DNA from: Klebsormidium nitens
Taxonomy: Eukaryota; Plantae; Klebsormidiophyceae
Assembly: GCA_000708835.1 (NCBI GenBank)
Contig: DF237163.1
Span: 74,673 to 138,672 of the forward strand
Reading direction: 5' to 3'
Length of the DNA stretch: 64,000 nt
Below are positions 43,473-50,340 of the stretch, piece after piece. Below the pieces are notes generated by a model. The model searched no databases. It had not been told where the DNA came from and saw only the letters and a list, made by a program, of their open reading frames with translations. The translations under genes and the position numbers were made by a program. Position 1 is the first letter of the stretch, and each line of letters starts with the position of its first letter.

Positions 43473-46400
43473 ATGGCTCGTCACGCAGAGGAAGAACGGG
43501 ATGCGTCAAAGAATGCTAAACAGCACCGCTCAGCAGAACGAAAGACCGATGTGGAAGTGGAACCTACCAAGAAGCACAGCACTAAAGAAAAGTTTCACAA
43601 GGAAGAAGGGAAGGATAAGCGCAAAGAGAAGTCAAAAGACGAAAAGCGAGAGAGCAGGCATCGAGACGAGAGCGGTAAGGAGACGCGAAGGAATGGGTAT
43701 GAGGACAAGGATGCTCGTGAGGAAGTTAGAGCAGCCGCTAGGAGCTCCAATCGGCAAGAACAGCTGGAGGACAAGAGGGAGGACAGAACTGGGGACAAGA
43801 GCCAAAGGGAACATAGGAGGGAAGGCTCAAAAGACAAGAAGGATGATGATAGAAGTCCTCTAGAACCACAGAAGACCAATGCTGTCGAGGGAGAAAGAAG
43901 GAAGGCGAGCAAGGAGCTCATGTGTGAAGTTTGCGAGCATAGAGAAGCCACAATGTGGTGCGGTGACTGTGGGGACATCTTCTACTGTAGAAAGTGTGCG
44001 GATGCCGATCATTCTAGGGGGAAGAGAAAGGAGCATCTGCCCCTTCGAACAGCAGAAAAGGCGCCCCAGCGTGCAGCCACAAAAGTGGTCAAGTGCGAGG
44101 AGCATGGAGAGATACTGCGGGCTTATTGCGAGACGGACAGGAAGGCCGTTTGCAGCCTGTGTCTTCACATTGGAAACCATAAGGTGAGGTCACTCAGTGG
44201 CAACAGCGTTGAGGATGTGCGAGTCAGGTCACAGTGCATGGTAAATAACGAAGCTATACATCTTTTGAAATAACCAGTCGCGGCTGCATGAATTGTTGCT
44301 TTATCAAAGAGGTAAAACCTGCGCGCTGAATGCAGTATTGTGAGTATTCTTACTTATTCCAAAGAGTGCCTGTTTTACCGCTAGCGTTACAGTGCGTAGC
44401 AAGCGGATAAGCTCGTGCAAAACTCTCATACTACAACAAGATGCCAAATCGGCTACTTGCAATTGCCAGGGCCATTCCGCAGTCGAGCTTGACAAAGCTG
44501 TTCGAGCTGCAAGAGACTCCATCCGCAAGGAAGCTGGGGACCTTATTCTGGAGCGCCAGAAGGTGGACACATTCTTGGACGAAATGGAGGAGATGGCTGA
44601 GTCGTTGAAGAAGGTAAGACTTGCAAGCAGGAACTCAAAGGTCAGGAAATATCTTTGGAACCTACGTAAGCTTCCTTGTCTAAGGGAGTTCGGAGGCCTC
44701 AGGGCCATGCTGTTTTGCTGATTGTTCGGGCAGGCTGTGTAAGGGAAGTTGGAAAATATTAGTGTTTATTGCATACTGACGATCGTCTGCATACAGACCA
44801 CTCGGCAAAAGTGCTGGTGTTGACAAGCTTAGCATCCTGTGTGCAATCTCTCGATTCATCTCAAGGCCGACGATAATGAGGTCCCATAACACAATTGCCA
44901 GCGGCTCTCGCTAATTACTGCACCAGAATGAACGCAAACATGCTATGATGGAGAAGCACCTCCAAATCATTCTCTGCGTTTCTGCAGAACGGGGCGGAGC
45001 TTAGAGAACACCTGCGGACTGCATGCGACTCGTTCAGAGCAGTACTTACGGAGAGAGAGGCGGCGCTTCTGGTTCAGGTCGACGAGGTAAGGGCTGCTTA
45101 TACGGCTCTTGTGGCTCCGATAATCAAAAGTTCGTGCCAGCAACCGCCACAGTCTTGATTCCAAAGACATGCTGGTTAGATCAATTGGAACTTGGCATAC
45201 AGATCTGAACTTATAAGGGCTGCAGTCGTAAGGGAAGAAAAGACAGAGAAATAAAGTCTGGATTGGACTTATCACCGAACGTTGAGAACTCGAGACTTGG
45301 CCATTTTGACGATCGGTCAGCCCGCGGTCAGTCACTGACGTTGAGCCGCTACCATCGAATACTGTGCGCAATTGGGGATGTCCAGAAGCCTTTCGTTTGC
45401 GTCTTTCCATGCTGTCAAGCACAATACGCATAGGTGTCACTTTGATGTGCAGCGCGAAAGTGAGAAGACGAGTATCATCGGTCGACAGAGGGCGCGGTGG
45501 AAGGACACAGTCACCGAGGTCAATAAGGTGAGTACGCTTCTATGTAGAAACAATTCTTGACGCTCCGGGAGATTGTTCTATAGAAGAACAATCATCTTTT
45601 GCCAGAGATTGTTCTTGGAAAAGCGGAGACCCTGACGTGTATGACTTCTGTATCCCCCTTGAGTCCCGGACATTATACTCAACCTCAGATTCTTTCCCTG
45701 CTTTCTTGGCAGCTTTTCTAGATCCTGACCTTATGAGTTACCACCTTTAACCTTTTCTTTACTGCACTTGCACACTGCAGGCTCGGGACCTGGCTGAAGC
45801 AGCTCTCAAGGAAGCTGACCCAGTTGTGCTGCTGAAGAAGCGGGACGCCTTCGAGCAGCAGGTAAGAGGCGAGCGAATACTTTCATCAAACGATTACAAT
45901 CATATCTAGTAGGCTTTAAGAGCCTTCTGACTGGGAAGCATTGTGACTTTTTCCACTTTCAGTTCCAAAAACCTTCTCTAGCCACAATTCAGAGCTACAT
46001 CCCTCTCCGAAATGAAGGCACTCTTACTTTACCTTTCCGTGGCACCTGTTCGAACTCATCTTCCTTTCATCCAGGCGCACGCCCTCCGCATCGCGGCCGC
46101 GCGCCGCAGCGCGACGCCCGCTACCACCGCGTCCCTCGACCTGGCCCTGGAAGCGGACCCTTTCATCAATCTCATACGGGAGTCTCTAGTGTTCAGCTCT
46201 AGCGCATCGGCGAACAGGGCCTCCAGCGTGATCGCGCGGCTGCAGCAGGCGCAGAGTCAGAAAGCGAGCCTGACGGACAACACAGTGGTCGTCCTCCCAA
46301 GAGGCTGCTTGGAGGTGAGGAACGTGGCGCTACTGGAGAGCTTGGCTTATAGCATAATGAAGGTCGTGAAGCGCAATACAGTTGATTACAACCTCTTTTG

Positions 46401-49400
46401 GATCTTCGAGTTGGATATATTGGATCACAGACGCGTTTGCTGCTCGAGATTCTCAAACGCTCTCGTTAAGTCATCCTTGGCAGCGTTGAATGAGTTACGA
46501 AGTAGGGCAAGATAAATGCGTACAAGGATGCGGCACGAGACCCAGACACGGCGTGCACGCACGACAGAAACGGCTGCCGGGATAAGTTTTTGGGTTTCGT
46601 TGACTAAGATTGGCTACGTGCGCCTCCTTCTTTCAGGTCGCGCACGTCTCGCCCAACCTCGCCACCAATCACGACTCGTCCTCACCGGACGCCTGGATCG
46701 GACGGCTGTGGGAGCTCCGGGAACACGTGGCCGCATTTGAGGCGTCCAAAGCCGCCGCCTTGGAGCTCTCCAGAACGAAGCGCAAGGGGAGACGAGATCA
46801 GCCCGAGAAAGAGAACGACACCGCAATAAAAGCGGCGATGAAGATCCAAGCTCGGTGGCGGGGGGCAAGTCTCAGGAAAGCGAACTCGTTGGAAGTGCTT
46901 AAGGCCTTCCGGGGATGTGGGGTCAGGGGGAGTGTCGTCTACACGCCGGAAGGAGACTCGAGCGATGGCGCTGACGAGCGGTAAGACTTTAAATAAAAAA
47001 AAGACTGTATTCTTCCACAAAGAACTAGAACATTTTAAGGGCATTGGAACGGCGCTAAGTTCCACCATGATTTACAAAAGTAATAGGAGTGTCCTAAAGA
47101 GGGGAAAAGAAGGTCTTAATGGATAAAGTAAGAGAGGTCATGCAGCTTCGTCTTCTTCAACGTTTAGTCCTGTCGTTCGTAGCCAGTCTCAGAAGTGATT
47201 CTGAAGGGCATGGATCGCTCGTCCTTTTACAGATACGTCAAGACACTTGCCAACTTGGGCTGCTTGGTCGTGCTTGCCGGTCGCCAAGCGGAAGCCCCGG
47301 GAAAGCGCGCCCCTTCTTTATCGACACGGAACCCGTCCGGTCCTTCGCCGCTCGAAGCCTGGTGAGAGAAGCAAGCCCTGCTTTTATCGAAGCCCTGATT
47401 TTGTGTTCGGTTGAATGCAGATGCATCCGCAAAATAGAGTCCCCGCAGCTTTCTGTAGGCCCGCAATACACAAAATGCATTAGCAGCGGCGTGAAGAGAT
47501 CCTATCCATGCATCCTGCCTGCAATGAAAGACCCTGGCTTTGTCTTAATCTTTCCTGAGGCGTCTTTCGCGGGACAATGATCGGCTGCTTGAAACTTCAC
47601 CCGGTATCCTTTTCCGGACGCTACCGTTGTTGCTGATTTCCAGATCAGAACACTACCGCTCTTGGAAAGAGGACTTACCCTGCATTGGAAGCGCGTTGTC
47701 TATCTTTGTTAGGGCTTCCTTTCTGACTAGTCTTTTCCTGCCAGGCTTGAAGCGCAGGACCATGCGGACGATTCGGCCGTCCGAGAAGCCAAGGCGGTGG
47801 CCCAGATCAGCCACCTGGTAAAGGCCCTGCCTGCCTGCATCAGGTGAGAAGTTTGGTTCGGGATGGCGAGCCGGATGATCGAGAACATCGAATTTATCTG
47901 CAGTTTCCCTGCATCTTTCTGCATCGCGTTGACCTCTACTACAAAAGGTGTTGACTCCGTACGTGCGCTTTCTTGCTGCGTCATCTTTCTTACTCCCCGT
48001 GAACCGTGCAGGCAAAGCGGCGTTTTCTTGATGGGCCACGGTCGAGGCGGGGAGCTTTTGTCCCGTGCCGAAATGCAGAGATCCCTCCGCGAGCTGGTGA
48101 CCGGGACAATTCTCTCCGGTTGCAGCCAGCTTGGGACGGGGTTGGCAGGAAACGTCCTTGCTCTGGATTTCAAAGCAAGCGAGGTAGGCTCCGCTTCAGC
48201 TTTCCTATCACCAGCCGATTTTGGACCGAGTGCGGCAACTAGATCTTGCTCCTTAGTTGATGTTGCTTAGAGCCCTTGGAGCGCTTCATGGAGGATACTG
48301 GTCGAAAGTTTTTAAGCCCAAAAAGAACTTCATATCTTCCTCCTCCCGGTGTCCTCCAATTCAGTTGGCTCCGTGCCCCTGCTAAACAACAGGGGTACTG
48401 AGAAGCATGTTGCGCCAGCATTGGTTTGTCCAAATTCGCTTCTTAAGGTCGCAGACGACTTGTAATCACTCGTAGGCTGTGTCGAATCCCTCGTCATCAG
48501 AGGGAAGCGGCTCTTCTTACTAATACATCCATCTCAAAGCCATCATTTTTCACCCTCTCGTGATGATGTCGTAGCACTTTCTTATAGAGTTGTGTCGTTT
48601 TGATTTGCAGGCCACTCCAGCCTCATTCGAAGTCCTTCTTGCCGGCAACGTTGACAGCGGCCTCACCGCCACGCTGCCCGCTGACTTCCTGGAAGACGTC
48701 TCTACTTCGAAAGGTGAGATGCGAAGCGCTGCTCAAGGCTTGCCAGCTTGACCCAGCGCGATGTCGAGACTTTGGACGCCTGCCGAAAGTAGGTAATGTT
48801 GCCGTTGGAAATGCACGATCGAACGGTTCGAGCCTGCGGGCTGTCAAGCTTTTTGTCTTTCAATATTCTGTGAGCACCCCTTGTATCTGCCCGCGTCTTT
48901 GCCAAGCCATGTCCCCCATAAATGATCTCCTAGGTGGATCCCTCAGCATCTCAAGTCTCGTTTAATTATCGAGAATGAGCGCGCTTGCAACATTCTTTTG
49001 ATCCTAAAAACCGAAGCGAATCGCTCTGGTACCGTTCAAACCTGCTCCAAAAAAGTTCCGCCCGCTTTCCGTCCCCTGCAGACGGAATCCTCCGCGAGCT
49101 GCTTCTGACGTTCCTGTGCAAGCCCCAGCGGATCCACCTCCTGGACAAGCTGTGGGAAACGGAACCGCACCTGGCCAAACAGCTGACTGTCACCGGGCGA
49201 AAGTGAGAAGCAGGACACTAGCCCTGATTGTATTGCGGTCTAAAGGTGATCTTTCAGTTTGAAAAGACGAGCGTCAAGTACGCTGCATGGAGAGTGATGA
49301 AGCTAAAGAGGGACAACTCGAGAAGCCTCAAATTCCGGTTTTATAATCAAGACGATGCTCCTCTCTATCTGCGATGAGTCTGGCGACGTCACACAGAGAT

Positions 49401-50340
49401 AAGTGCAAGCAAGCCATGTACCCCCTTTCCATGCACTGATGCGTTTGTTTTGTGCAGAGGAAATGTGCTGTCAGTAAGCATCCAACCAACCGGCCGGACC
49501 ACGCGTCACAAACGGAACGGAGCGCTGGCACCGGAAAGCGCCCCCAAGAGCGGATCCCCTGCCAAAGAGGACCCGAAAGCGGGTGCTAACGGTTCCAAAT
49601 TGTTAGAGCGATCTGGGTCGATCCGTAAGCCGCAGCCCGTGAGCGAGGCACTTCCGGCGCAATATGGTTCCGGGGAGCTTCAGAAGCGGACGGAACCAGA
49701 AGCGGTGGAGACGAGCGGAGCGCCGAAGAACGAGGGGCCGTTGGCGGAAGTCGGGGCCAGTAGTCCCTCGCAATTGCCTTCTTCTACGTCCGGGGCAAAC
49801 CTTACCCAAAGTCTCAACCGAAACCCAAACCCAAACCCAAACCCGACTCAAGCTTCGTCTAGCAATCACCCCGGTTCCGCCCTTCCGGTTCCGGCGCCAC
49901 CTTCCGCAACAGCCCTGAATTCCCGGGCACCCACTCAGCCAGGGAGTACTTTCCTCTCAACCCAACCGGGGCCCCCTGAGACCACGCAACCGGGCGCGAG
50001 CCTCTCGTCCCGACCTTCGTTCAGCTCTTCCCGACCTCCCTTAGTGGGCTCGTCTTACACGACTCCAACGGCTCCAAACCCCGCGGTTTCTCCCAACCCC
50101 ACAGGCGCTTACGCGCCTTCGACGGCGGCTTCTTCGCTCATGAGCGCCTTGGGTAGCTCAGCATACGGACGAAGCGCGGCCGACGCGGCCGCGGCGCGCG
50201 TTCCCGCAGCCCAGCAGCCGCCTTTAAACGGGGCGTATGTCCCGGGTGCTTCGGCTGGGCGACTCGGGCAGCCGGGAACGGCGCCGTCCGCGGGTTTGCC
50301 CGGCGACCAGGGAGCACCGAGAAATGGAATGACGAGATAA
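43473..50340 (+). CDS. Multidomain protein: charged low-complexity N-terminus, B-box1, B-box2, coiled coil, IQ motif, alpha/beta-hydrolase-like domain, P/S/A-rich tail; 13 exons, ~1066 aa
   Basis: Exons 43473-44183, 44470-44613, 44988-45086, 45453-45527, 45781-45861, 46075-46314, 46637-46980, 47233-47361, 47745-47843, 48012-48183, 48611-48713, 49082-49202, 49458-50340. All introns are GT-AG and the 3201-nt total is in frame. B-box1 CEVC..CGDC..CRKC..H..H, B-box2 CEEH..CETD..CSLC..HKGH, IQ motif MKIQARWRGASLRK. The link from exon 7 to exon 8 uses CG|GTAAG at 46981; without splicing this frame stops at 46984. Confidence 0.8.
49821..49844 (+). repeat. (AAACCC)4 coding microsatellite (NPNPNPNP)
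   Basis: Four perfect AAACCC units in the last exon of the B-box gene. Confidence 0.9.

Follow-up and report, generated by a model that had tools for sequence, protein, structure and literature searches.

A candidate RING-less TRIM-like protein with a putative pseudo-hydrolase end in early-diverging streptophyte algae

A 64,000-nucleotide stretch of contig DF237163.1 of the Klebsormidium nitens assembly GCA_000708835.1 (the window; all coordinates below are positions within it) contains a 13-exon open reading frame (ORF) on the + strand at 43473-50340. This ORF is probably a single gene, kept by selection, that belongs to a small gene family of streptophyte algae, and its product would be TRIM-like, would lack a RING, and would end in a pseudo-hydrolase domain. 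As judged by comparison with related sequences, the 13-exon structure is far beyond chance, and it recurs end to end in two genomes under purifying selection. The predicted protein presents, in order, a type 1 B-box, a type 2 B-box, a coiled coil, an IQ motif, a globular domain, and a disordered tail, without a RING, so that the arrangement given in the initial annotation of this DNA holds. The protein appears to be a scaffold similar to TRIM proteins, known so far only from early-diverging streptophyte algae, and its C-terminal module is undescribed. Statements about the whole protein combine exon-wise results with the evidence of two related loci and of a Mesostigma viride protein taken from a database.

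Gene structure and continuity across intron 7

A script check of exon borders and phases bore out the earlier proposal of 13 phase-consistent exons encoding about 1066 residues: all introns are of the GT..AG type, the phases are consistent, and the coding sequence sums to 3201 nt, corresponding to 1066 codons plus the TAA at 50338-50340. An in-frame stop lies 21 nt upstream of the ATG at 43473, with no other in-frame ATG in between, and the Met-Ala-Arg start is kept in both related loci described below (L001, as seen in fragment P0002, and L002). An additional upstream exon encoding a RING was considered and was rejected because of this conserved start and the in-frame stop ahead of it. The exons, with GT..AG borders and phases checked by script, and the features that they encode are as follows.

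43473-44183, + strand: exon 1
43473-43907, + strand: start codon and disordered low-complexity head (145 residues, 58% E/K/R/D)
43923-44036, + strand: B-box type 1, C-x2-C-x8-C-x2-C-x5-C-x2-C-x4-H-x7-H (regex)
44094-44183, + strand: B-box type 2, C-x2-H-x7-C-x2-D-x4-C-x2-C-x5-H-x2-H (regex)
44470-44613, + strand: exon 2, end of B-box2 and start of the coiled coil (strong heptad periodicity)
44988-45086, + strand: exon 3
45453-45527, + strand: exon 4
45781-45861, + strand: exon 5
44988-45861, + strand: putative helical rod continuing the coiled coil, exons 3-5 (no indels relative to Mesostigma, conserved splice sites)
46075-46314, + strand: exon 6, linker with two conserved blocks (blastp to Mesostigma 203-248 and 370-401)
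46637-46980, + strand: exon 7, conserved WIGRLWELREH block, IQ motif, and opening strand of the C-terminal domain; phase 2 end at the donor CG/GTAAG
46844-46876, + strand: IQ core IQARWRGASLR (regex; seen in 0.06% of exon 7 shuffles)
46922-49202, + strand: C-terminal globular domain, end of exon 7 and exons 8-12 (colinear with Mesostigma; match to a dienelactone hydrolase profile)
46981-47232, + strand: intron 7 (position and phase identical in L001 and L002; conservation no better than that of other introns)
47233-47361, + strand: exon 8
47745-47843, + strand: exon 9
48012-48183, + strand: exon 10
48034-48051, + strand: elbow G-H-G-R-G-G, with Gly at the nucleophile Cys position of the dienelactone hydrolases (hhalign alignment)
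48611-48713, + strand: exon 11
49082-49202, + strand: exon 12
49458-50340, + strand: exon 13, S/P/A/G-rich tail of 293 residues, including the stop

When the B-box part of exon 1 was used for a HMMER search over 1.84 billion representative proteins, ORF fragments were recovered at 98% and 85% identity. Fragment P0001 came from Logan run SRR23617307, and its contig provided locus L002; fragment P0002 came from JGI metagenome 3300060284, and its contig provided locus L001. The B-box search also returned a Mesostigma viride protein, Mv00351-RA.2 (P0006, 1070 residues), which has a longer isoform (RA.1, P0127, 1162 residues). These isoforms differ at the N-terminus only; RA.2 begins inside B-box1 and would thereby lose half of it, which could reflect either an error of annotation or the use of a second start. 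By tblastn, all 13 exons were present in L001 and L002, in order and from the first to the last residue, and the window shares with both loci every intron position and its GT/AG borders (12 of 12). Exon lengths are the same across the three loci or differ by multiples of 3; intron 5 measures 213, 279, and 790 nt across them, and intron 7 measures 252 nt in the window, 245 nt in L002, and 467 nt in L001. DNA identity to the relatives is 64-93% in exons and 25-64% in introns. The Nei-Gojobori ratio of nonsynonymous to synonymous substitution rates (dN/dS) was 0.05 (L002) and 0.07 (L001) for exons 2-6, with values of 0.12 and 0.18, respectively, for exons 8 and 10-12 together. The end-to-end recurrence and the low dN/dS indicate that both halves of the ORF are coding in the proposed frames and are under purifying selection. 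By blastp, the Mesostigma protein matches exons 1-8 and 10-12 colinearly, with zero indels over the 133 residues of exons 2-5.

The notion of two neighboring genes, i.e., a B-box/coiled-coil/IQ gene that ends at the TAA at 46984 and a second gene that occupies 47233-50340, has hardly any probability in our estimation. What speaks for it is an in-frame TAA directly behind exon 7 (46982-46984) and, in the window, a downstream A-rich run (AAATAAAAAAAA) together with an in-frame ATG at 47210 just before exon 8. That TAA, however, belongs to the donor consensus G/GTAAG, which recurs at the same phase in L001 and L002, and the codon split across the intron specifies Arg in the window and in both loci. 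The A-rich run and the ATG, in contrast, are found in the window only; they are missing from both relatives, in which the open stretch upstream of exon 8 contains no Met. A separate downstream gene starting from ATG 47210 was rejected because this ATG is not conserved. Exons 8 and 9 of the window are likewise free of Met, yet these exons are under purifying selection. The strand that opens the C-terminal domain (VRGSVVY) is encoded in exon 7, on the upstream side of the junction, where it aligns with the hydrolase strand that precedes the G-Y-x-V-x-x-P-D unit discussed below. The Mesostigma model is continuous through the same point, with exon 7 ending at its residue 539 and exon 8 starting at residue 542 ('DE[R]YVKTLANLG' aligned on 'DLRYCRMLAGMG'), with the caveat that Mv00351 is a gene model itself. 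The 46980->47233 splice, on which the initial annotation depended, is thus conserved at both related loci and spanned by the Mesostigma model.

The A-rich run AAATAAAAAAAA lies at 46985-47010, right behind the in-frame TAA of intron 7. In the window genome it could permit an intron-retaining, early-polyadenylated isoform that comprises the B-box, coiled-coil, and IQ parts only.

Tandem B-boxes, coiled coil, and IQ motif

Pfam matched exon 1 to zf-B_box (PF00643, E 9.5e-11) over two stretches, the best at 204-237, and to ANCHR-like_BBOX (PF22586, E 5.4e-8) over B-box1. B-box2 takes its last zinc ligand, a His, from the second codon of exon 2 (44473-44475). No RING was found above the Pfam threshold; the only signal of this kind was zf-C3HC4_3 at 17.6 bits (cut-off 27), which overlaps B-box1, and Pfam detected no RING in the Mesostigma orthologue. 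The closest relative by sequence among solved structures was the tandem B-box pair of MID1 (2jun, E 3e-6, residues 3-92 on 3-92), followed in the phmmer search of the PDB by the B-box2 domains of TRIM72, TRIM21, TRIM41, and TRIM5. Pfam, the ligand patterns, and the full-length MID1 alignment therefore agree on the claimed type 1 and type 2 pair. An AlphaFold2 (AF2) model of the B-box part, built on a 52-row alignment, had a predicted local distance difference test score (pLDDT) of 82, with about 90 for B-box1. Foldseek searches with this model retrieved mostly B-box folds, with ZZ and RING fingers lower, at E values of only 1e-3 to 1e-1; the top rows were Toxoplasma 9ya0, the CONSTANS and COL2 pairs, the B-box1 domains of PML and TRIM28, MID1, and the B-box2 of TRIM5. 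In the predicted structure the region is a tandem B-box fold; TRIM and BBX types are indistinguishable by fold, and the TRIM type is favored by sequence.

In the order and spacing of B-box1, B-box2, and coiled coil, and in the presence of a variable C-terminal domain behind the rod, the predicted protein resembles the TRIM/RBCC proteins, above all their RING-less members and MID1. It differs from them in that it has no RING, carries an IQ motif and a hydrolase-like C-terminal module, and is encoded by a streptophyte alga rather than an animal. We know of no TRIM class that has an IQ motif and a hydrolase-like C-terminal module. Plant BBX/CONSTANS-like proteins share the tandem B-boxes, and one might take the protein for a nuclear transcription co-regulator of that kind, in which the B-boxes are the working part and the rest is accessory. 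Such an assignment, which we regard as unlikely, could point to the CONSTANS and COL2 pairs ranking as high as TRIM by fold, to the green-lineage genome, and to the richness of the N-terminal region in basic and acidic residues. By sequence, however, the PDB relatives at E 0.01 or better were MID1 and TRIM proteins, not CONSTANS or COL2, and B-box2 begins with C-x2-H like the B-box2 of TRIM proteins. Furthermore, a coiled coil directly follows B-box2, and Pfam found no CCT domain in the exons or in the Mesostigma orthologue. Among the 119 nearest B-box proteins, in which 49 families were matched in all, CCT was not one of the 25 commonest families; about 19 of these proteins have a RING, and 8 have a Pfam IQ match.

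The Toxoplasma gondii entry PDB 9ya0, which comprises pre-conoidal ring proteins (e.g., PCR4, TGME49_201220), gave the best structural match to the tandem B-boxes and also matched them in sequence. This match suggests that tandem B-boxes also build a cytoskeletal ring in apicomplexans.

The segment behind B-box2 displays the 3.5-residue periodicity of a coiled coil, with z scores of 6.7-6.9 for exon 2 and 9.5 for Mesostigma residues 161-226. In an alignment with TRIM72 (residues 9-116) and TRIM5, the Mesostigma orthologue matched over B-box2 and 70-110 residues of coiled coil at an E value of about 1e-5. Exon 2 is 92-94% identical at the protein level in L001 and L002, with a dN/dS of 0.03, and exons 3-5 gave dN/dS values of 0.02-0.12 relative to L002; the exon 6 linker is 96% identical in L002 and 79% in L001. 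A long coiled coil had been claimed. The part that stands is the run of heptads directly after B-box2, which extends for about 60 residues; beyond it the heptad signal is weak, with none that is clear in the remainder of exons 3-5, and this counts against a coiled coil of the full length, although Pro and Gly are scarce in these exons.

The IQ core was sought as [FILV]Qxxx[RK]Gxxx[RK] and was found in all four sequences (IQALWRGASLR in L001 and IQRSWRGQRAR in Mesostigma), the common form being IQxxxRGxxxR. With the core consensus conserved in this way, the claim of an IQ motif is upheld. Two observations detract from it: the Pfam IQ model PF00612 gave 17.3 bits for the window and 13.3 bits for Mesostigma, below its cut-off of 20.3, and the hydrophobic residue that is usual in IQ motifs three positions past the last Arg is missing here. 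About 15 residues separate the motif from the strand that follows it at the start of the C-terminal domain. The coupling to Ca2+/calmodulin and the binding of a ligand that had been suggested for this protein are pure inference.

The C-terminal domain and its likeness to dienelactone hydrolases

The globular domain comprises about 230 residues in its window version; the Mesostigma version has long low-complexity inserts. Four elements are conserved between the window and Mesostigma: a strand (VRGSVVY in the window, LRGVVVF in Mesostigma), a helix-strand unit (YVKTLANLGCLVVLAG and YCRMLAGMGYLVIVPD, respectively), a helix followed by GVFLMGHGRGG or GVFLMGVGEGG, and a final helix (GILRELLLTFL or GALRELLVTFL). 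The domain was compared by hhalign with the dienelactone hydrolase (DLH) family. When single proteins were used for this purpose, YsgA ranked first among 29 from E. coli at a score of 20.9 versus 20.7 and was not separated from the others; a profile of 16 DLH sequences, from E. coli ysgA together with 15 diverse DLH genes carried on plasmids, was therefore used instead. The family alignment had the trimmed Mesostigma sequence as master and the Klebsormidium-type exon translations as separate rows. Where exon fragments were aligned as rows under the Mesostigma protein, MAFFT misplaced weakly conserved exons, and such alignments were not used for folding.

Against the DLH profile, the family scored 32.9 with a pairwise E value of 5.5e-4. 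A null of 280 column shuffles had a mean of 13.7, a standard deviation of 2.5, and a maximum of 22.8, and the reversed alignment scored 13.7. At a looser alignment threshold the match was colinear over 180 columns, with family positions 11-254 on YsgA 52-237. The alignment places the family G-x-G-x-G-G on the DLH elbow G-F-C-x-G-G, such that the Cys nucleophile faces Gly, and pairs the Asp of Mesostigma S-H-D-E-F with the DLH Asp and the His of G-A-G-H-D with the DLH His. Of 42 controls, PldB, a true alpha/beta hydrolase, was alone in reaching the range of the family, at 34.9. Fre, an unrelated flavin reductase of E. coli, came to 30.1, a further 38 proteins stayed at 24.2 or below, and the remaining parts of the Mesostigma protein gave 10.8-14.7. 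Without trimming, the Mesostigma domain reached 36.9 against this profile. ESM Atlas neighbors shown for Mesostigma residues 575-960 were DLH or other alpha/beta-hydrolase clusters, except for two without a name, and the ten best family-bearing neighbors all shared the family or clan.

These data point to a DLH-like alpha/beta-hydrolase fold for the C-terminal domain, which we regard as probable, on support that is good and not conclusive. The proposed likeness to the DLH family (PF01738; YsgA and the carboxymethylenebutenolidases) takes in the aligned strand, the helix with its G-Y-x-V-x-x-P-D unit, an elbow of the form G-x-Nu-x-G-G, the strand that bears Asp, and the loop that bears His, as well as the size of the window version (about 230 residues). 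The differences are Gly in place of Cys, the loss of His in the window, and the fusion of the domain behind a B-box/coiled-coil/IQ module.

As an alternative, the domain might adopt some other alpha/beta fold of three layers, such as a Rossmann- or flavodoxin-like one, or a fold not seen before, and the hydrolase-like motifs would then be a coincidence; this is doubtful but keeps some weight. Several results weigh against the DLH assignment and lend this alternative its plausibility. Neither Pfam (E up to 5) nor NCBIfam (E up to 10) assigned a hydrolase family to the C-terminal exons or to P0127, and a PDB profile search with exon 10 found no hydrolase. ESM Atlas returned no neighbors for exon 10 alone, and the neighbors found with the Mesostigma segment had scores of 0.85-0.87, in a range (below 0.9) that provides leads only. 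The hhalign probability was 30%, Fre came near the family score, and the single E. coli proteins left YsgA unseparated. An AF2 model of the 1162-residue P0127, made with no alignment, had a pLDDT of 38 and was not usable. On the other side, the family score exceeded all 280 shuffles (z about 7.7), one colinear alignment set the elbow, Asp, and His on the DLH triad columns, the family-bearing Atlas neighbors all belonged to the alpha/beta-hydrolase clan, and the remaining parts of the same protein scored low. The proximity of Fre (30.1) to PldB (34.9) is also a general caution for shallow profile-profile tests of alpha/beta folds.

If the DLH-like fold call is right, the domain would be a pseudoenzyme that binds rather than cleaves. 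The nucleophile column is Gly in the window, L001, L002, and Mesostigma, and at the His column the window and L002 have Phe and L001 has Thr; Asp and His are both retained in Mesostigma. In the Klebsormidium-type sequences exon 10 ends with an invariant Glu that falls within one residue of the acid column, and a loss of the acid can therefore not be claimed. This Glu and the retained Asp and His of Mesostigma might be taken to favor an active hydrolase that employs a non-canonical nucleophile or a water-based mechanism. We hold that to be very improbable, given Gly at the nucleophile column in 4 of 4 sequences and Phe or Thr at the His column of the Klebsormidium-type proteins. The earlier description of the domain as alpha/beta-hydrolase-like has support short of proof: the colinear profile match and the Atlas neighbors argue for it, whereas no hidden Markov model matched. 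The nucleophile is missing, and the window version is without the His.

The tail behind this domain, encoded by exon 13, is 54% S/P/A/G and is 67% identical in L002 and 39% identical in L001, with indels; it had no Pfam match.

Distribution, relatives, and possible mode of action

In a search for the same architecture, it was found elsewhere only in Klebsormidium-like genomes and in Mesostigma viride. The members so far are the window genome, L001, L002, a further Logan fragment (P0128), and Mesostigma. Protein searches with the whole of P0006 and with P0127 residues 880-960 returned Mesostigma only; these searches were limited by length, and shorter or longer relatives are possible. The protein search with exon 13 returned the L002 ORF only. 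No relative was confirmed by metagenome scans based on the exon 12 and B-box alignments, a tblastn search of plasmids with P0127 gave no match, and no land-plant relatives were found in these searches. Of the 124 other B-box proteins recovered as nearest, not one carried the C-terminal domain. A literature search found no published description of a B-box/coiled-coil/IQ/hydrolase-like architecture, in keeping with the earlier remark that it matches no described protein.

The nearest B-box relatives by HMMER were protist proteins, namely an SH3-B1-B2 protein of Gefionella, a RING-B1-B2 protein of the euglenid Ploeotia, and a multi-B-box protein of Amorphochlora. TRIM37-like genes have been described in fungi, plants, and protists (Marin 2012, PMC3503706). 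The TRIM37-like 'subfamily A' of that study and the protist B1-B2-coiled-coil proteins resemble the Klebsormidium family in having B-box and coiled-coil modules outside animals; they differ in that theirs are combined with RING and MATH, with RING, or with SH3, and they are without the C-terminal domain of the Klebsormidium family. The premise of the initial annotation, that the B1-B2-coiled-coil arrangement is the core and hallmark of metazoan proteins, is too narrow in view of these non-animal TRIM37-like genes and protist relatives, and it is not retained.

The preferred reading of a RING-less TRIM-like scaffold suggests a way in which the protein might work. Its coiled coil would form an elongated dimer, as in TRIM proteins, and its B-boxes would mediate self-assembly or contacts with partners. 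The presumably dead hydrolase domain would stand in for the variable C-terminal recognition domain of TRIM proteins (SPRY, NHL, or MATH), and calmodulin or a calmodulin-like protein, bound at the IQ motif at the entrance to that domain, would gate it. Lacking a RING, the protein would have no ubiquitin (E3) ligase activity of its own. Alpha/beta-hydrolase-fold receptors are represented in land plants by GID1, D14, and KAI2. With only a slim chance of being right, one could go further and picture the dead hydrolase domain as a small-molecule receptor on a TRIM-like oligomerizing scaffold, gated by Ca2+/calmodulin via the IQ motif, that served early-diverging streptophyte algae and was lost before land plants. 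If true, this would be an ancient signaling device.

TRIM-type B-box/coiled-coil (BBC) scaffolds have been studied almost solely in animals, and work on plant B-box proteins has centered on the BBX transcription regulators. Two deep streptophyte-algal lineages, the Klebsormidium type and Mesostigma, appear to maintain a B1-B2-coiled-coil protein under purifying selection, which offers a tangible example with which to study the reuse of the BBC module in proteins other than ubiquitin ligases. The family would also add a new pseudoenzyme family, with a domain that is probably a dead DLH-like one.

B-boxes and IQ motifs also occurred together outside this family. B-box1-type fingers and one to six full IQ cores were present in proteins of Rhytidocystis pertsovi, of a MAST-4 stramenopile, and of marine eukaryote contigs; the protist proteins with both elements are P0020, P0023, P0034, P0035, P0040, P0056, P0097, P0110, P0118, and P0121. 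They resemble the Klebsormidium protein in combining B-box1-type fingers and full IQ cores in one chain, and they differ from it in having several B-box1-like repeats or IQs, no B-box2 by the pattern used, and no hydrolase-like domain. The combination of B-box and IQ seems to be a recurrent, undescribed pairing outside the Klebsormidium/Mesostigma family.

A bacterial protein was another match to the B-box query. P0007 (BBK40815.1, from Stella/Allostella vacuolata) has 1516 residues with CHAT, STAND NTPase, and TPR regions, and the query matched it in seven stretches near the C-terminus (E 1.4e-9). Together these stretches resemble an array of B-box-like zinc fingers, here carried by a STAND protein of bacterial origin.

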